Of a stretch of 51,575 nt of DNA, positions 10,784 to 48,831 are shown piece by piece. Origin of the DNA: Octopus bimaculoides (Eukaryota). The notes beneath the pieces are model-generated. The model was not told the DNA's origin, did no database searches, and saw only the letters and a program-made list of their open reading frames with translations. The translations under genes and the position numbers were made by a program. Numbering within the stretch: the stretch's first letter is position 1; each line of letters starts with the position of its first letter. The DNA lies in the NCBI RefSeq assembly GCF_001194135.2, contig NC_068983.1, positions 154,745,905 through 154,797,479 of the forward strand. The letters are read 5' to 3'.

Positions 10784-11207
10784 GGCGGCGAGCTGGCAGA
10801 AACGTTAGCACGCCGGGCAAAATTCTAAGCGGTATTTCATCTACCGCTACGTTCTAAGTTCAAATTCCGCCGAGGTCGACTTTTCCTTTCGGGGTCGATT
10901 AAATAATTACCAGTTAGGCACTGGGGTCGGTATTATCGACTTAATCCGTTGGTCTGTCCTTGTTTGTCCCCTTTGTGTGTAGCTACTTGTGGGCAGTAAA
11001 GAAATAAGAAACGTTAGCACGCCGGGTGAAATGCTTAGCTGTATTTCGTTTGTCATAACGTTTTGAGTTCAAATTCTGCTGAGGTCGACTTTACCTTTCA
11101 TTCTTTCGGGGGCGATAAATTAAGTACCAGTTGCGTACTGGGGTCGATCTAATCGACTAGCCCCCTTCCCCAAACTTTCGGGCTTTGTGCATAGAGTAGA
11201 AAAGAAT
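10784..11207 (+). mobile_element. Dimeric SINE family B (monomer 1 with type-1 tail, monomer 2 with type-2 tail)
   Basis: GAAACGTTAGCACGCCGGG occurs twice (~10800 and ~11008), each followed by a GTTCAAATTC B box and GGTCGACTTT domain; the two tails differ. Confidence 0.9.
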
Positions 11208-11739
11208 ATGCACAAATATAGTGTTCCCATCAGCTATTCTCACAACCAGCCGTTGGTTATCAAGGAAGCACAAGTCATATTACTTAATTTTGATAGTGCC
11301 ATAACGGAAAATACATGTAGACCACACCTAAAGAAATTATTGGTTAATATGTATGGAAGTACTATTATATCTACATTTAGAAACGTAAGACAACAAGCTA
11401 TCGATAAAAACGGGGTGAATTAGAAGGTGGCATTCAAATAAACTGGCGTTGAATAGAATATCTCCTCCCACAGGGTGACACTGAAACATACAATTTTAAG
11501 GTTGTTCCTCTGAGATGGTTCATAACTAGGATCACATCCAGTCTGTTATAAAATGTTACGTTTAGTCTAGAGTGAACAAGATCTATCAGTCACCACACGT
11601 GATTTGTCATTAGCTTGTTAAATACAGATACAGTAACTGTATGACATGGAACCTTTCCTATAATACCTTTCAGTACCAGTGATTATTTCACAGAGCTTTC
11701 GAAACTGATGAGGTTTATGCAGATATTGGTTAGCGTGAA

Positions 11740-15796: not shown

Positions 15797-16550
15797 GTGC
15801 CGCCTCTTTTAGTTTTCGTATTAATAACACACACCAAGTATGGATTCAGGACATCCGTATATCGCAAGCCAAACTTCACTGGACGATACCTCAACTTCAA
15901 TTCCCTCCATCCATACAGTGTAAAGAGAGGGATTGCTCAGTGCCTAAAACATCGATCAAAGAATATAAGTAGCGATCCTGATGCACGCCACGGAAACATG
16001 ATCAAGTTAAGTAACAATCTATTAAACAACAACTACCCAAAAAACATACGATCCACTCCAATTAGGAAGAGGAGAGAGGAAGAGACTCATAAACTGACCA
16101 CAATCTGTCTACCCTATGTGAAAGGCCCCTCTGAAAAGATACAAAAGATATACGGCCCATATGACATCAAGACAGTATTCAAGAGTAATACAACACTTTG
16201 CAAATATCTCCTTCGAGTAAAACCACCAATAGAAGAGAATATGACTAAGAACTGCGTGCATCCCATCTCATAGAGTTTTGATAGGTTATACAAAGGCGAA
16301 ACGTGTCGCCCACTCAAAATAAGGGTAGAGGAGCATCGTAAAGCTGTGACACGAGGAAATGTTGAAACATCGGGTATAGCTGATCATGTATGGAAAAGCG
16401 GAGACCACCTTCGTCTGTGGGATGAAGTTAGAATAATAGAGAACACTGCTGGAAAATACGAAAACTCAAAGAGGCAGTACGTATAACCTCCTAAGCAGAC
16501 CTAGTGCAGATATTAGTAGAATATGGGAACCGGTATTATGGAAAGATATA
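15797..16550 (+). pseudogene. Penelope-like element ORF 3' part (RT end plus GIY-YIG endonuclease), 5'-truncated
   Basis: TSVYRKPNFTGRYLNFNSLHP; ICLPYVKG; NCVHPIS*...YKGETCRPLKIRVEEHRKAV...SGIADHVW. Confidence 0.92.
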
Positions 16551-18224: not shown

Positions 18225-18673
18225 TGGGTGTGGGTGTGATTGTATGCGTGTGTATTCTTACTGACAGATTTTTTTCACTCTTGCTCTACATCTCGGTATG
18301 CCCATCAGTATTCACATCTTAGAATTAATCTTATTTTAATTAAAGGAGGAACCACTGAATTTCTTCGCCCCACATTGGTAACGCTTCTCATCGGTAACGC
18401 TTTCCTGTATAAAGGCCTAAATGTATTTGTTTTCCCAAATAAATCTCACTTCATGTTTGAGGCTCTGATGAAACTTGGGCACTTAACTATGAATCCACCG
18501 CATCTTATAGTGGGAACAGCTGTAAGCTAATGAAATTCATAAGATAATAGTTTATTCCTTTGTCATTTTTTACTTTATTACCGCTCTGTCCTCGACTAAC
18601 GCTTCTTTCAAAAGCATAAGTATACTAATTTCTAGACCGGGTTATTAGTATTACAATATCTAAGCGAAATATT

Positions 18674-18791
18674 AGTTTCAAATTCTGGCACAAGACCAGC
18701 AAGTTTAGCAGAGGGCTAAGTTGATTTTTATGAGGCTCCGAAAGAACGAAAGGTAAACTCAACTTTGGCGGAATTTGAAGTCAGAACGCTG
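18674..18791 (-). mobile_element. 5'-truncated SINE family B (type-3 tail) with 13-bp TSD
   Basis: GTTCTGACTTCAAATTCCGCC...GTGCCAGAATTTGAAAC; TAAGCGAAATATT at 18661-18673 and 18792-18804. Confidence 0.75.
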
Positions 18792-24083: not shown

Positions 24084-26080
24084 CGTAGGCCACCGTCTTG
24101 AAATTAAACACAAAGAGTGACTGTGTTATCACCGATAGAATACAATATCGCAAAGGCATATTCCAAGGAGACAGTCTCTCTGTGATGTTTATACTCTCTG
24201 TAAACCCCTTGTCATTCATGTTAAGAAAGTCTGAAAGATATCTCACTGGTTCACAAGGAAATAGAAACACCAAAATTACACACTCTTTCTTTGTGGATGA
24301 CTTGAAACTTTATGCAATGAATATGCATGAGATGAAAAAGAACCTTGACCTAGTTACAACATTCTCAAAAGATATAGGGTTGGAGTTTGGTCAGGATAAA
24401 TGTTGTTATATGGCTGTGAAAAGGACGAAAACTATAAACCAAACTAGTAACATCTCCGTCAGTTATTTTACTGTTTTTCGGTATCTGATGAGGAATATTA
24501 CAGGTATTTAGGGGTGAATGAAAATACATCTTACAATCGCACCTGTAACAAAACACGCATCACTAAAGAATATTACAGCCGAATAAAGAAAATTTGGACC
24601 TCAGAACTTTCTGCATTCAATAAAACAGTGGCCCACAATGTGTTTGCAGTGCCAGGACTCATACCAACATTTGGGCTGCTTGATTTGACGCTTGATGAGA
24701 TCCGAGTCATTGATGTAAAAACCTGAAAAATACTAACAAGCACACGTAATTTCCACATAAACAGTAATGTAGACTGCCTCTACCTAAAACGAAAACAAGG
24801 CAGAAGAGACTTAACATTGATCCAAAATGCCTTTTAATGTCGCATCATATCCCTTCGGCAACATCTTTTAACCACCAAGTGTCGAGGTGCATCCCTTGAC
24901 TAAGTATGCAAACGTGAGGCTGATAACATCATAAGACTTGGAAGGCAGCTACTTGAGCAACACTCTTTGTCGGATAACATGCCCGAAGAAGTCGCACGTC
25001 TCTACCGCAGCGCATCATCAGATGAAAGGATGAGCCTATATAGGCAGAAGACTTTGCATGGTTATGTTACTAGAAAGCTCCGTGACGATAGTAACATCGA
25101 TCATCAAAGCAGTTTATCATGGACGAATAGCCGGGTTACTAACTCGCACTTTGAAGTGTATGCGTTTGCAATCCAAGGACAGGAAATATCGACCAAATAC
25201 CTGATGCACAAAAGGGGTAGAGATGCAGGAAAAGCCATAAAATGTGACAACCGATGCAAACTTTGTAGAGTTCACACTGAAGATATCACTCACATCATAA
25301 GCAGTTGTCCGAAAATGTCATCACGGTGTTATCTACCGATGAGACATGACGTTGTAGCTAGGACACTCTATAATGAAATCCGTCAGAAGGATAATCCCGA
25401 CGATTAAGAAATAAGAACCCACAATATGGTAGAAGCCATAGCCACTCATAATAGAAAGGAATATTGGTGGAATATACCAGTGAAGACCTCAATAAAATGT
25501 AAGAACAACAGACCTGTCATAATGATTTAGGACAGAGAAGAGAAACTGTACACAGTTGTAGAAATTAGCTGTATAGCGGATGTTAACATAAAGCTGAAGA
25601 TCAGTGAAAAAGAGAACACCTATGCTAAACTATTGAGAAATCTGCAGTTGCTCTATCCAGATTACAAGTTCAGGTTTATGCCTGTAATTATTGGGGCCCT
25701 GGGATATGTAACAAATATGTAAAAATCTTGAGAAATTAGGCTTTTCACAACCAGAGAGGAGAAAGCTAATTCGAAGGCTACAGATCCAATCCGTCACTGG
25801 AACTGTAAAAATTTGTAAAATTTTCCAAAAGTTTATCATTTAAGTATATATGAGCATGTCTATGTAACTATATACAAAAGAATATATGCATAAAACATAA
25901 AAATCTTCACATCCTTCCATCCATCCATTCATCCATCCATCCATCCATACATACATACATACATACATACATACAAACTCTGTTGTTGATGCTGAAATTC
26001 CAATGAATGAACCTTGGATCTAGGTTAGAAACCAATTCTTTCTCTACTGGTAAAAAATCTTGAGATAAACTAAATAATGA
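24084..26080 (+). mobile_element. 5'-truncated R4/Dong-like non-LTR retrotransposon (RT, CCHC knuckle, restriction-like endonuclease, 3' UTR); pseudogenised
   Basis: KGIFQGDSLS, FFVDDLKLY, YRYLG; CKLCRVHTEDITHIISSC and RHD; NRP.IMI...VVEISC...EKENTYAKL. Multiple stops and frameshifts. Confidence 0.92.
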
Positions 26081-32287: not shown

Positions 32288-32531
32288 GGTGGCGAGCTGG
32301 CAGAACCGTTAGCACGCCGGGCTAAATGCTTAGAGGTATTTCGTCTGCCGATACGTTTCTAAGTTCAAATTCCGCCGAGGTCGACTTTGCCTTTCATCTT
32401 TTCGATAAATTAAATACCAATGGTACTTAATGGGGTCGATAAATTAAGTACCAATGAAACACTGGGGTCGACGTCATCGACAAGTCCTCTCCCCACAAAT
32501 TTCGGACCTTGTGTCTTGAGTAGAAAGGATT
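32288..32531 (+). mobile_element. SINE family B, type-2 tail, with a local duplication-inversion
   Basis: GGTGGCGAGCTGGCAGAACCGTTAGCACGCCGGG...GTAGAAAGGAT. Confidence 0.88.
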
Positions 32532-33170: not shown

Positions 33171-33195
33171 ATAAATATCATAGAGTCAGATACAA

Positions 33196-33410
33196 CGATT
33201 TCAAATTTTGGTACAGGGCCAACTGTTTTTGAGGGTGGTGGGATGTCGATTACATCGACCCCAGTTCTTAACTGGTAATTATTTTCTCGACCCCGAAAGG
33301 ATGAAAGGAAAAGTCGACCCAGATAGAACTTGATCTCAAAACAGAACCATGGACGAAATGCAGGTAAACATTTTCTCCGGCGTGCTAACGATTCTGCCAC
33401 CGCGCCGCCT
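33196..33410 (-). mobile_element. SINE family B, type-3 tail
   Basis: Reverse complement GGCGGCGCGGTGGCAGAATCGTTAGCACGCCGG...CCTTTCATCCTTTCGGGGTCG...GTACCAAAATTTGAAATC. Confidence 0.85.
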
Positions 33411-34773: not shown

Positions 34774-34775
34774 GC

Positions 34776-34990
34776 GGAGGCGCGTAGCTTAGTGGTTAGG
34801 GTGTTAGACTCATGATCGTATGATTGTGGTTTCGATTCCTGGACCGGGTGTCCAACCTACTCAGCTGGCAAAAATGAGTAATCCTGCGACGGACCGGTGT
34901 CCCTTCCAAGTGGGAAATTTATACGCCATGGAAACCTGGAAACCTGCCCTTATGAGTCGGTATGACTCGAGAAGATAACCTTTACCTAAC
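34776..34990 (+). mobile_element. SINE family C (tail 1) with internal deletion; ends in an ACCTTT-like unit
   Basis: GGAGGCGCGTAGCTTAGTGGTTAGGGTG, GGTTTCGATTCC, CTCAGCTGGCAAAAATGAGTA, CCTGCGACGGAC...GAAGATAACCTTTACC. Confidence 0.85.
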
Positions 34991-41824: not shown

Positions 41825-42506
41825 NNNNNNNNNNNNNNNNNNNNNNNNNNNNNNNNNNNNNNNNNNNNNNNNNNNNNNNNNNNNNNNNNNNNNNNNNNNN
41901 NNNNNNNNNNNNNNNNNNNNNNNNNNNNNNNNNNNNNNNNNNNNNNNNNNNNNNNNNNNNNNNNNNNNNNNNNNNNNNNNNNNNNNNNNNNNNNNNNNNN
42001 NNNNNNNNNNNNNNNNNNNNNNNNNNNNNNNNNNNNNNNNNNNNNNNNNNNNNNNNNNNNNNNNNNNNNNNNNNNNNNNNNNNNNNNNNNNNNNNNNNNN
42101 NNNNNNNNNNNNNNNNNNNNNNNNNNNNNNNNNNNNNNNNNNNNNNNNNNNNNNNNNNNNNNNNNNNNNNNNNNNNNNNNNNNNNNNNNNNNNNNNNNNN
42201 NNNNNNNNNNNNNNNNNNNNNNNNNNNNNNNNNNNNNNNNNNNNNNNNNNNNNNNNNNNNNNNNNNNNNNNNNNNNNNNNNNNNNNNNNNNNNNNNNNNN
42301 NNNNNNNNNNNNNNNNNNNNNNNNNNNNNNNNNNNNNNNNNNNNNNNNNNNNNNNNNNNNNNNNNNNNNNNNNNNNNNNNNNNNNNNNNNNNNNNNNNNN
42401 NNNNNNNNNNNNNNNNNNNNNNNNNNNNNNNNNNNNNNNNNNNNNNNNNNNNNNNNNNNNNNNNNNNNNNNNNNNNNNNNNNNNNNNNNNNNNNNNNNNN
42501 NNNNNC
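41825..42506. other. Assembly gap (N-run)
   Basis: N-run. Confidence 1.
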
Positions 42507-43388
42507 CCACAGGTCCGAAATGGTTGGACACTGCACGAGTGCGTGCAGAACGGTTTCGTCGCTCTGACCGCGTCTCGGGCAAGTCGGTCCGGTGTGTCTC
42601 GAACCGTGCCTGTAGAGCTTATCCCGAACGGGTAATGGTTCTCGATAGCACTGCCAGGCCAGGGATCTTTGATGATTGTCCATAGGTCCCGGCCCGAAAG
42701 TTGTCCTGAACAGGTGGGTCAGGTGTTCCTCGTCTATGCCCAGATTCTGCCCCAGAACGTCGTCGCACCTCCCCTCCGCTAATCCTCTATAGAACGCCTT
42801 TGTTGTAATGAAGTCGCACAAGTTTGGCCTGAGTACAACGCGACACTCACGTTGCCATTCGCCTAGCTTCGGTCTCTGTTTGATCCACGACTGCACTTAG
42901 GCCAAGGAGACGAGCTACGAGAAAGCACGCCGCACAAACTGCGACCACACCTTTTTACCGTAATCTATGAAGCACCGGAGATGTTGCAGACTCAGCGCAT
43001 GTCTGCGCATCATCAACCGCAGCATGCCTAGCCCTCCATTTAGCGGGTATTGACAGCAGATGGATCATCTAACAATCGGAACGCTTCCCTTCCACAAGAA
43101 GCGGAAGAGTATGCGTTCCAGTTTGGTAATGGTAAGGTCGGGACAAGGCACGACGGTCAGATGGTAATCGATAACGGATGCGATGTACGCGTTCGCCATC
43201 TCCGCCCGACCTTTTAGGGATACCTTCCTCTCGGCCCATTGGTGGGTGAGAGTGGCCACCCTAGTCGTTACTTCACCCCAGTTCTTCTCCAATTGAAGGT
43301 CCGGACCGAACCACACTCTGAGCAATTTAGCCGGTCCGTCGGTCCAGCGTACCATGATGGAGACGCGGTTGGGCGGCATGGGCTTGCT
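42507..43388 (-). mobile_element. Tx1/L1-clade LINE copy 1 (5'-truncated; 3' end lost in the gap)
   Basis: WAERKVSLKGRAEMAN...LFRFLWKG; AWQCYREPLPVRDKL...CPR.GQSDETVLHALVQCP (zf-RVT type). Confidence 0.88.

Positions 43389-43478
<90 letters not shown>
43389..43478. repeat. Perfect (GATA)n (~22 units) separating two Tx1 copies
   Basis: Direct inspection. Confidence 0.98.
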
Positions 43479-43479
<1 letters not shown>

Positions 43480-44843
43480 TGTTTCTTTCTTAGCCACAAA
43501 GAGCTGAACACAGACGGGACAAAATATAAAGTAGAGCTTTTCTTTTTTGGGAAGGAAAGAAAAAAAGTGGGGTAGAATTTCGATCAAAAGGGATCCTGGA
43601 AAGAAAAGAAAAAAAAAGGAAGCCGATCAATAGGGATCGTGTATCACAGAAATATCATAATGTAAAAGGGGAAACAGATTAGGTTTATCTGTGGAAAGAA
43701 AAGCCTACGGAAAAGACCACGGTAACCTCGGGCAATCATGCCATGCAAAAAACACATTACAGTAAGTGACTCTCTTTTTTCCTTTCTTTTCCTTGTTCAT
43801 AGGATTATGCTCAAGGTGGCTCCGTCATTCACACGTGCCATCCTTGCTACATTCACCCATCTTTTTTTGAAACATTCACTAGACAAAACTTCCCTCTCTA
43901 CTCTCACCTTTTTCTTCAAGTGATACTTGAAGAAGTTGATGAGAGATTCACCAGAGAGGAAAGTGTTTGTTTCTAGATCCTTCGGGCGCGTCGACTATAC
44001 ACATTCTTTCGCCATGGCCACAAGTACAGTGAAAACGGCTCTTCCTTCCAGTTTCAAGGAAGGAGGCGCGACAATATTCGCGATAGACTCGGTTGATAAA
44101 CTGACTCGTCCCACACGCGATAGCAGTCCTTTGACAGGTCGGAAATGGTTAGACACTGCACGAGTGCGTGCAGAACGGTTTTGTCGCTCTGACCACATCT
44201 TGGGAAGGTCGGCCCCGTGTTTCTTGAGCCATGCCTGTAGAGCTTATCCCGAAAGGGTAACGCTTCTCGATAGCACTGCCAGGCCAGGGATCTCTGGAAG
44301 TTGTCCATAGGCTCCGGCTCGAAAGTCGTCCTGAACAGGCAGGTCAGGTAATCCTCATTGATGCCCAGGTTCGCTCCGAGATCGTCGTCGTACCTCCCCT
44401 CCACTAATCCCCTATAGAATGTTTTGGTTGTGTTCCAGTCGCTCAAGGCCGACCCGGGACTGCATAGTTGCTCGAGAGCAACGCGACACTCACGGTGCCA
44501 TTCGCCCTTCCTCGGCCTCTTTTTGAATCCACGACTGCAATTCGGTCATGGAGACGAGGTGCGCAAAGTGCGCCTCACAAACGGCGATCATACCTGTTCA
44601 TCGTCGTCTACGTAGAGCCAGAGATGTCGCAGTCTCAGCACATGTCTGCGCATCATCAACCACGGCATGCCCAGCCCTCCATTTAACTAGTATTGGCAGG
44701 AAACGGATCGCCTGACCATCGGAACGCATCTTTTCCACAAGAAGCGTAAGAGAATGCGTTCCAGTTTGGTAATGGTAGGGTCAGGACAAGGCACGATGGT
44801 CAGGCGGTAGTAGATGACGGACGCGATGTAAGTGTTCGCCACG
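43479..44843 (-). mobile_element. Tx1/L1-clade LINE copy 2 (5'-truncated; complete pyrimidine-rich 3' UTR)
   Basis: Colinear with copy 1 (roughly 80-90% by eye); ORF end ...KKRWVNVARMARVNDGATLSIIL*; UTR ends GCTCTTTGTGGCTAAGAAAGAAACAC. Confidence 0.9.
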
Positions 44844-44874: not shown

Positions 44875-45195
44875 AAGACGCGTGGCTTAGTGGTCAGGGT
44901 ATTTGTCTCACGATCGTAAAATCATGAGTTCGATTACCGGCGGCGCATTGTGTCTTTGAACAAGACACTTCATTTCATGTTGCTCCAGTTCTCTCAGCTA
45001 TCAAAAACGAGTAGTACCTGTAATTCAAAGGGCCAGCCTTGTCAATATTGTGTCAAGCTGAATCTCCCTGAGAACTATGTTATGGGTAAACGTGTCTGTG
45101 GATCGCTCAGCCACTTGCACATTAATTTCACGTGCAGGCTGTTCCGTTGATCGGATCAACTGGAACCACTCGTCGCCATGACCGACAGAGTGTCA
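44875..45195 (+). mobile_element. SINE: family-C head and core with tail 2
   Basis: GACGCGTGGCTTAGTGGTCAGGG, GAGTTCGATT, CTCAGCTATCAAAAACGAGTA, then GTACCTGTAATTCAAAGGG...GATCGGATCAACTGGAACC shared with 49451-49928. Confidence 0.85.
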
Positions 45196-48095: not shown

Positions 48096-48635
48096 AAAAT
48101 GAGCGGTTGGTAAAAAAAAGTCACTCACTATCATCAGTTCGGTTTTCCTGATTATTCTCACCGAGGTTCGTAAATGCTGGGAAATGACCGAAACAGTTCG
48201 ATTGCGAATACAAGCGACGGAAATGGGGTACCGTTGAAAGATCTCTCCAATAGCGTTACTCGATGGGGTGCGTAGCTCGGTAATCGGGGAATTTCACCAG
48301 ATTGAGCCGCTACTTCTCTAGACTGAAAGGTTACAGCTCCAGTATTGTGGATACGAGATCAGAATGTTGTAGAAAGAATTACAAGACTGATTCTTCAACG
48401 TGAGCCAACCGGCAAGAGACCTACGGGTAGCCCAAGAAAGAGATGGCAAGGCGATATCCATAGCCTCAGTTGGTCACGATTGAGAATCTTGCTGGAAATT
48501 CTAATGACGATTGCTTCTGATAACACTCAGTGGACAAGATCCCTGAGGACTCTACCCCCACCACAACCCTCCCAGGAATGGGGAACGTTGAAAAAAGGAA
48601 GATGGATGGATGGATGGATGGATGGATGGATGGAC
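48096..48635 (+). mobile_element. RTE-clade (Expander/Rex3-like) LINE 3' segment with (GATG)n tail
   Basis: WEMTETVRLRIQATEMGY...VRSSVI...IEPLLL; GKRPTGSPRKRW...LSWSRL...LPPPQP. Confidence 0.85.
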
Positions 48636-48831
48636 CCCTCATTAATAATGTATGTCAACTGTTTTAGCATTGTGTTGTAATATTAGTTTTGCGTTGTTTC
48701 TTGGAGGGGAATGTAAAGTAATGATTTCACCACTGACATTTTCTGTGTTTATGGATGGATATTCACTGTTTCTGTATAGGGATAGATATTTATTTATACA
48801 TTTACTGTAGACGGCCGTGATATATCTGTTA

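Follow-up and report, generated by a model that had tools for sequence, protein, structure and literature searches.

A shared 3' tail points to a partnership between SINEs and a probably Tx1-like LINE lineage in octopods

In the octopus Octopus bimaculoides, the last ~45 nucleotides (nt) of a subfamily of short interspersed elements (SINEs) correspond to the 3' end of an octopod lineage of long interspersed elements (LINEs) that belongs to the L1 superfamily and is probably Tx1-like. The elements were analysed in a stretch of 51,575 nt of contig NC_068983.1 (positions 154,745,905 to 154,797,479), hereafter the window. That SINEs borrow the 3' end of their LINE is textbook knowledge, and we read the common end, here called the type-1 tail, as the mark of such a tail-sharing partnership, with a probability of about 0.75. 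The LINE lineage very probably copies the type-1 SINEs. The partnership had been proposed from the letters of the window alone (hereafter the sequence-only reading). The tail is now found at five LINE 3' ends and on many SINEs of the octopod Argonauta, and profiles made from these recover the three sites of the window.

A tail common to SINEs and LINEs

The tail of the first SINE copy (363-406) and the end of one of the LINEs of the window (copy B, 43480-43523) are identical at 35 of 44 positions in an ungapped comparison on the plus strand, exactly as in the sequence-only reading, which had also placed the same tail at 10962-11007. We retrieved the latter with 40/44 identities to 363-406 (10963-11006, reverse strand). 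The next-best score for the 44-mer on both strands of the whole window (~103,000 positions) was only 24/44. We then aligned locally the whole SINE (234 nt) with the whole 3' untranslated region (UTR) of the LINE (327 nt), taking 1000 dinucleotide shuffles as the null. The best alignment was made of the last 42 nt of both elements (34/42 identities) and scored 44, against 18.1 ± 2.4 for the shuffles (maximum 30, z = 10.8). The second SINE copy gave z = 6.7 with the same UTR. These alignments have the same orientation and stop 2 nt short of both termini. The tails are therefore at the extreme 3' ends of the elements and in matching orientation, as originally noted, with the refinement that both elements are on the minus strand and that the LINE tail is followed by (CTAT)~22. 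The match of the tails in the window is far beyond chance, and the similarity is above chance at the level of the families too.

The window contains two 5'-truncated and decayed copies of the LINE, placed head to tail on the minus strand (Table 1). The remnant of the second open reading frame (ORF2) of copy B has 80% nucleotide identity to copy A and 77% to its closest relative, a locus with an intact frame (L003). Its frame terminates with ...GATLSIIL* at 43797-43799. Since the LINE frame, the stop, and the 3' UTR precede the tail, and (CTAT)n follows it, we regard 43480-43523 as the LINE's own end. Copy A begins right after the (CTAT)~22 and enters an assembly gap (41825-42505), which hides its 3' end, i.e., what would have been a second LINE tail in the window. 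The DNA of the window is repeat-rich and includes ten such gaps (runs of N).

We obtained relatives of the LINE via the protein collection: the Argonauta loci L002 and L008, the ENA contig L005, and also L001, L003, and L009. The closest named relatives of the window LINE proteins are from the octopod Argonauta hians. The Argonauta locus L002 contains a near-full-length element (ORF1 at 5558-7477, ORF2 at 7468-10969 with two frameshifts). Its 3' UTR ends with ...TCGTCCCCTCTATGTTTTTGCCCTTGTGGCTAATAAAAGAAAT and then (ATT)n, the terminal letters being GCCCTTGTGGCTAATAAAAGAAAT(ATT)n. The same locus contains a 100-nt LINE 3' fragment (tail motif at 4828-4848) that ends with ...GGACCCTTGTGGTCAATAAAAGAAT(TAT)n. 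A second Argonauta LINE family, found in L008, ends with ...GCGCCCATGTGGCTAATAAAGAAAT(CTAT)5, which is the repeat present in the window, and the LINE of the ENA contig ends with ...CCTCTTGTGGCCAATCAA(CA)n. In L003, the UTR can be aligned with that of copy B until the contig ends inside the tail. The LINE consensus does not end elsewhere: the 3' ends of the relatives finish at the same motif, which in three LINE ends of Argonauta hians and one of the ENA contig reads C[C/T]TTGTGGC[T/C]AA...GAAAT and is followed by a microsatellite. The coding DNA of the LINEs bearing this motif is only 65-77% identical and their 3' UTRs can be aligned only over the last ~45 nt. From one LINE family to the next, the tail has been kept whereas the remainder of the 3' UTR has diverged, and five LINE 3' ends carry the motif. 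Such conservation, confined to the terminus, is what one usually sees at a 3' end on which the element depends. Scans of metagenomes and of the genome collection, by protein and by DNA pattern, provided no additional octopod copies.

The SINE body is present in seven copies or fragments in the window, of which two, 363-593 (-) and 10784-11007 (+), carry the type-1 tail and are 88% identical to each other. The element has the traits of a SINE: it is short (231 nt), non-coding, dispersed, and associated with target duplications of 10-16 bp. The first copy is flanked by a 13-bp target duplication, ACACAT(A/G)TATATG, and its 3' end is therefore defined to the base; on the 5' side (593-605) the final G of the duplication overlaps the first base of the SINE. 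None of the copies, in the window or in Argonauta, has a poly(A) tail. The element is thus not an Alu-like passenger, i.e., one with a 3' poly(A) and lacking unique sequence in common with a LINE, because it has a unique shared tail. The two type-1 copies of the window also lack (CTAT)n: the first ends with ...GAAATA beside the duplication, and the second with ...GAAATA(AG) abutting 11007. The head of the SINE is tRNA-like by eye, with a B-box-like GTTCAAATTCC and an acceptor-like pairing GGCGG...CCGCC. ARAGORN and Rfam called no tRNA or RNA family in the window SINE, and the Rfam scan of the whole window gave no match.

Two side observations concern these SINE copies. The second type-1 copy is fused to a truncated copy with a different tail, and the pair (10784-11207) is flanked by one repeat, ATGCACAAA, at 10769-10777 and 11208-11216. 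The 5' repeat lies six bases off the SINE head, and the duplication is not clean. The region 10769-11216 looks like a single chimeric insertion, during which the enzyme would have switched template from one SINE RNA to another. The window also has a second tRNA-like SINE, unrelated to the first (...GCTTAGTGGTTA...GTTTCGATTCC...), at ~606-850 (+), ~34775-34950 (+), and ~44880-45000 (-). One of its copies adjoins the type-1 SINE and another is just upstream of LINE copy B.

The tail is abundant in Argonauta. Within the 20.8 kb of L002 we counted 27 occurrences of the motif CCTTGTGGCTAATAGAGAAAT, accepting up to five mismatches. Two of these occurrences are LINE ends, and most of the other 25 close recognisable SINE copies. 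The SINEs ending with the motif in this locus have at least two unrelated bodies: one is the homologue of the window SINE and the other is a simple element of ~157 nt, whose head has a sub-threshold tRNA match (21.8 bits, E 0.045). In both families it is the very end that matches the Argonauta LINE tails (25/27 including CTAT, z = 11.8); with the tail of the other LINE family of Argonauta, z is 8.3-8.6. The tail of the window SINE matches the Argonauta LINE tail (z = 11.0) as strongly as it matches the window LINE. To avoid circularity, we built nhmmer tail profiles either from 24 Argonauta SINE tails only or from the three other LINE tails only, and searched the window with them. The top match of the Argonauta SINE tail profile was the tail of LINE copy B (E 1.1e-5), followed by the SINE tails (1.3e-4 and 0.56). 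The top three matches of the LINE tail profile were the SINE tails (3.2e-4 and 0.022) and the tail of LINE copy B (0.024).

Table 1. Elements of the window bearing on the shared tail (positions in the window).
Feature	Position	Strand	Details
Full-length SINE with type-1 tail	363..593	-	231 nt; head GGCGGCAAACTGGCAG... at 593, end ...GTAGTAAAGAAATA at 363
SINE type-1 tail	363..406	-	RNA sense TTTGTCCCCTCTGTGTGTAGCCCCTTGTGGGTAGTAAAGAAATA; z = 10.8 vs LINE UTR
3' target-site duplication of SINE	350..362	.	ACACATGTATATG on minus strand
5' target-site duplication of SINE	593..605	.	ACACATATATATG on minus strand; 12/13 identical to 3' copy
Second SINE copy with type-1 tail	10784..11007	+	tail 10962-11007; 40/44, z = 6.7
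5'-truncated SINE, same body, different tail	11007..11207	+	fused directly to the end of the type-1 copy
Further SINE tails	11140-11207, 32464-32531, 33193-33262 (-), 18668-18732 (-)		two types
LINE copy A	42506..43389	-	5'-truncated ORF2 remnant, one frame, three stops; zf-RVT just below the cut-off
(CTAT)~22 microsatellite	43390..43479	-	after LINE copy B tail; same repeat after the tail of Argonauta LINE family 3
LINE copy B	43480-44839	-	ORF2 remnant, 3' UTR, and tail
Unique 3' tail of LINE copy B	43480..43523	-	RNA sense TTTGTCCCGTCTGTGTTCAGCTCTTTGTGGCTAAGAAAGAAACA
LINE copy B 3' UTR	43480..43796	-	~317 nt; aligns with L003 UTR up to the contig end inside the tail
LINE copy B ORF2 remnant	43797..44839	-	5'-truncated, region after the reverse transcriptase, with CCHC finger; frameshifts and stops

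Target sites, tail structure, and a proposed mechanism

Nine SINE copies had clear target duplications, of 10-16 bp. The duplications vary in sequence, and in Argonauta most begin with TAT or ATT. Hence, the TAT of ...GAAATC|TAT belongs to the target. The 100-nt LINE fragment of L002 is likewise in an ATT-rich site. Such A/T-rich sites fit nicking by an endonuclease of the apurinic/apyrimidinic type (APE). They also fit a step in which the nicked DNA anneals to the (CUAU)n or (AUU)n at the RNA terminus. This annealing would explain the microsatellites at the ends of the LINEs. The starts of the duplications have microhomology with the LINE-terminal (CTAT)n or (ATT)n, which is a likely priming mechanism.

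These observations suggest the following sequence of events. The LINE ORF2 protein, with its APE endonuclease and its reverse transcriptase (RT), would recognise the terminal motif of its own RNA (...TTTGTC..TCTGTGTT..C[C/T]TTGTGGC[T/C]AA..AGAAAT, then a short repeat, (CUAU)n or (AUU)n), possibly presented as a hairpin of 3-4 bp with a C(U/A)UGU loop. The endonuclease would nick A/T-rich DNA, and the nicked end (...ATA-3') would anneal to the terminal UAU of the RNA and prime reverse transcription. SINE RNAs bearing the same tail would be copied in trans. We thus infer, from sequence comparisons, that the tail is what the protein recognises (a "stringent-type" element) and that microhomology serves in priming.

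By eye, the motif can form a 4-bp stem round a CUUGU loop, e.g., GGCC/GGCU, with apparent compensatory changes in the window SINE (GCCC/GGGU), in one Argonauta LINE (GACC/GGUC), and in L009 (GGC/GCC). Stem pairing in eight family-level sequences was 81%, against 69% in shuffles (5 of 500 as high). In the same sequences the covariation score was 0.43, against 0.20 (4 of 500), and three cells showed double-sided changes. The hairpin was present in four out of five single-sequence folds. The most conserved columns of the tail are the TTGT of the loop and the A-rich stretch past the stem. The family-level sequences lend some support to the conserved stem-loop with covariation for which the sequence-only reading had suggested a check, whereas RNAalifold and the pairing across 30 genomic copies (see below) lend none. 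The tail hairpin is suggestive only.

Elements of these families occur in head-to-tail chains. In the window, the two truncated LINEs joined by (CTAT)~22 form such a chain (42506-44839, minus strand). In L002 (4600-5360), the order is one SINE, the 100-nt LINE end and its (ATT)n, and a further three SINEs. Full-length LINEs are repeated in tandem every ~7.5 kb in L009 (348-12180). The SINE-SINE chimera of the window is another example. The chains may result from template switching or from preferred insertion beside existing tails.

Class of the LINE and alternative explanations

The full-length relative in Argonauta has the domains Exo_endo_phos, RVT_1, and zf-RVT. The N-terminal half of its ORF2 is collinear with residues 7-523 of the human L1 ORF2p (endonuclease, linker, and start of the RT, E 1e-12), and the RT half matches residues 567-882 (E 5e-22). 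The R2 proteins match it with 1e-13 or worse. The combination of APE, RT, and C-terminal Cys-His motif is common to L1 and several other clades, i.e., it is necessary but not sufficient for assignment to Tx1. In copy A of the window, zf-RVT scored 25.7 bits, just below the cut-off. The Argonauta ORF1 has one CCHC knuckle (weak zf-CCHC, E 0.062); it had no match to Transposase_22 and no relative was found in PDB. Animal ORF1s of the RRM/CCHC type were described as consistent with the Tx1 clade (PMC5203782). In octopus surveys based on RepeatMasker, L1-Tx1 is the sole LINE class of the L1 superfamily; 13 of its families have been active recently in O. vulgaris (PMC13282606, PMC8967140).

The protein searches, the representative search, and the cluster look-ups returned no protein named Tx1. 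The named relatives of the LINE come from Argonauta, fishes, mussels, and sea cucumbers, and are labelled "hypothetical" or "pol-like" proteins. The nearest named ORF2 relatives outside cephalopods are from the fish Metynnis hypsauchen (L006/L007), where several copies are clustered on the same chromosomes. In the fish relative, a ZCCHC3-type ORF1 (two RNA-binding domains and a CCHC) is annotated as part of one product with the endonuclease, the RT, and zf-RVT. The fish and Argonauta ORF2 are 29% identical, and the BLASTP comparison of their ORF1 regions was not significant. We found no link between ZCCHC3 and Tx1 in the literature. We tried to anchor the class of the LINE with the fish relative P0084, and rejected this candidate: its flanks had no Rfam gene (U2, 5S, etc.) and no clear target. 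Overall, the LINE belongs to the L1 superfamily and is probably Tx1-like, as judged from domain order and similarity; we regard the latter assignment as reasonably probable.

The window has other remnants of retroelements. A LINE fragment at 24098-25800 (+) has RVT_1 and a CCHC motif, with zf-RVT at 26.9 bits, below the cut-off. It is followed by a PD...E stretch resembling a restriction-like endonuclease and ends near (CATC)n/(CATA)n at 25910-25975. The fragment (24098-25975) is probably Dong/R4-like. The ORFs at 15797-16273 (+) and 48345-48680 (+) look like remnants of other retroelements and have no Pfam match.

Several observations weigh against the partnership as we describe it. A single LINE 3' end is visible in the window. 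With 80% identity between them, the LINE copies of the window are somewhat older than the two SINE copies, which share 88%. RNAalifold predicted no consensus structure for the 30 genomic copies of the tail, in which stem pairing (81.7% of cells) was no better than in shuffles (79.3%), and the z-scores of minimum free energy were mostly not significant (one alone reached -2.0). The insertions are dispersed and lack the strict target specificity typical of many Tx1 families. Finally, zf-RVT is not diagnostic alone, given that the Dong/R4-like fragment also scores 26.9 bits. Regarding the ages, public assemblies contain relatives whose reading frames are intact (L001 and L003). Hence, the ages of the LINE and of the SINE are not incompatible, which the sequence-only reading had named as a point on which the partnership could fail.

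How do these data fare under other explanations? The matching region is short and T/G-rich, as one might expect of a chance or low-complexity similarity. Yet, the 35/44 identities contrast with a maximum of 24/44 elsewhere in the window, the alignment is far above the dinucleotide shuffles (z = 10.8), and the independent cross-species profiles recover the same sites, so that we consider this explanation refuted. It is also very improbable that 43480-43523 is a short 5'-truncated SINE fragment abutting the LINE. Head-to-tail chains of elements are common here and adjacency alone is weak proof, but the UTR of L003, the closest relative with an intact frame, aligns continuously into the tail, and four other LINE 3' ends (from two Argonauta contigs and one ENA contig) have the motif directly before the microsatellite. 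The tail could also be shared by descent from a partnership that is now historical, the copies being mobilised by another LINE or by a tail-blind one (relaxed, requiring the terminal repeat only). This would fit the weak evidence for the hairpin, the lack of (CTAT)n in the window SINE copies, and the chimeric SINE-SINE insertion, which suggests that the enzyme can continue on RNAs with different tails. Octopus genomes also hold other recently active LINE classes: RTE, CR1, and Dong-R4 (PMC13282606). We nevertheless find it unlikely: LINE families with ORFs of only 65-77% identity, and with UTRs that cannot be aligned elsewhere, have kept the terminal ~45 nt, and in two genera the tail is also retained by SINEs of unrelated bodies. 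Conservation of the tail both in LINEs and on unrelated SINE bodies is difficult to account for unless active copies were under selection for it.

The partnership could be real and the LINE be an L1 proper, or a member of another APE-bearing clade with a C-terminal Cys-His motif. We regard this as possible, if somewhat doubtful. The absence of the Tx1 name among the matches of the protein searches speaks for it, as do the dispersed insertions, the zf-RVT score of the Dong/R4-like fragment, and the composition of the PDB contrast set, which has no APE-type LINE besides L1. Against it, the protein and the L1 ORF2p are collinear from the endonuclease over the linker to the RT, at almost the same spacing. 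Its endonuclease is matched better by Exo_endo_phos (43 bits) than by Exo_endo_phos_2 (16.8 bits, below the cut-off), which we take to favour an endonuclease of the L1/Tx1 type, not of the jockey/CR1 type. The ORF1 with a CCHC knuckle and no Transposase_22 is consistent with Tx1 in animals (PMC5203782), and L1-Tx1 is the sole L1-type class reported in octopus (PMC13282606, PMC8967140). We therefore retain the tail-sharing partnership with a probably Tx1-like LINE as the preferred reading.

Other tails, known pairs, and significance

The remaining SINE copies of the window bear two further types of tails (Table 1). By eye, these have a short stem round a YNUGU loop (e.g., GGAC/CUUGU/GUCU and CUGGU/CUUGU/GCCAG) and an A-rich ...GAAA end. 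They matched no LINE partner inside the window, and had no significant alignment with the LINE 3' UTRs that were compared, including that of L009. The UTR of L009 was similar by eye, and was rejected as a partner since z was at most 3.8 and the alignment lay away from the tails. The sequence-only reading had proposed sister forms of the SINE with other tails and, from these, LINE partner switching. The tails do exist; the compared UTRs gave no match in favour of the switching, which stands as a hypothesis. One may tentatively go further, and suppose that a Tx1-like LINE lineage of an animal recognises its 3' end specifically, by way of a small hairpin with a C(U/A)UGU loop and a (CUAU)n or (AUU)n priming repeat, and drives a large share of the octopod SINE expansion, the other tails being recognition variants of sister LINE families, with tails and enzymes co-diversifying. 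We consider this broader scenario rather unlikely as a whole.

As a partnership the octopod pair is of a familiar type, and its partner clade is somewhat unusual. A 2013 compilation gives 58 SINE/LINE pairs, mostly with CR1, L2, or RTE partners (PMC3747384), and the only pairs of the L1 clade are those of maize/sorghum and Chlamydomonas (PMC3747384, PMC3472496). The parts of it that were consulted include no cephalopod SINE and no LINE named Tx1, and no mention of molluscs or squid turned up when the paper was searched (PMC3747384). The pair UnaL2/UnaSINE1 of the eel and other SINEs with CR1, L2, or RTE partners resemble the octopod pair in the homology of the SINE and LINE 3' ends, in the short terminal repeat after the unique tail, and in the target duplications; for such pairs one also expects a conserved loop on a stem (Kajikawa and Okada 2002, as cited in PMC4494074, PMC3747384). 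They differ in that the octopod partner is of the L1 superfamily, not L2, CR1, or RTE, and in that the octopod hairpin has just 3-4 bp and is not statistically secure.

The closest parallels within L1-type elements are LINE1-1_ZM with ZmSINE2/3 (maize, sorghum) and L1-1_CR with SINEX-3_CR (Chlamydomonas). Like the octopod LINE, these have a conserved end of ~45 nt in common with SINEs, which are of the tRNA type, and this implies specific 3'-end recognition in an L1-type element (PMC3472496, PMC3747384). Those pairs are from plants and algae and have (T)n or poly(A) ends, whereas the octopod pair is from an animal, ends with (CTAT)n or (ATT)n, and probably falls on the side of Tx1. In crocodilians, SINEU and Tx1-Mar were also proposed as a partnership of a SINE with a Tx1-clade LINE in an animal (PMC4494074). 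That proposal was inferred from a shared target (a Mariner transposon) and from shared heads derived from small nuclear RNA; SINEU has poly(A) tails and no LINE matches its 3' half (PMC4494074). In octopods, on the contrary, the evidence is the unique 3' tail that the elements have in common, the heads look tRNA-like, and insertions are dispersed. Alu or B1 with the mammalian L1 are similar in that an enzyme of the L1 superfamily copies a short RNA in trans, and the octopod terminal repeat is probably where the primer anneals, a role that poly(A) has in Alu and B1. The octopod pair differs in lacking poly(A) and in having a unique shared tail before the repeat. We found no published tail-sharing SINE/LINE pair of octopus or other cephalopods in the literature, although entries of Repbase or Dfam may already note one.

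SINEs are unusually abundant in octopus genomes: in O. vulgaris they make up about 11.6% of the genome and nearly all are "unclassified" (PMC13282606). The LINE moving octopus SINEs is not named in the literature that we searched. The shared tail names a candidate mover, and a candidate driver for the large SINE load of octopods: a probably Tx1-like lineage within the L1 superfamily that occurs in two or more octopod genera. The pair would add an animal case to the few L1-type elements that apparently read a specific 3' end, not poly(A). Such a case of tail reading in an animal bears on the origin of the relaxed recognition of the mammalian L1.

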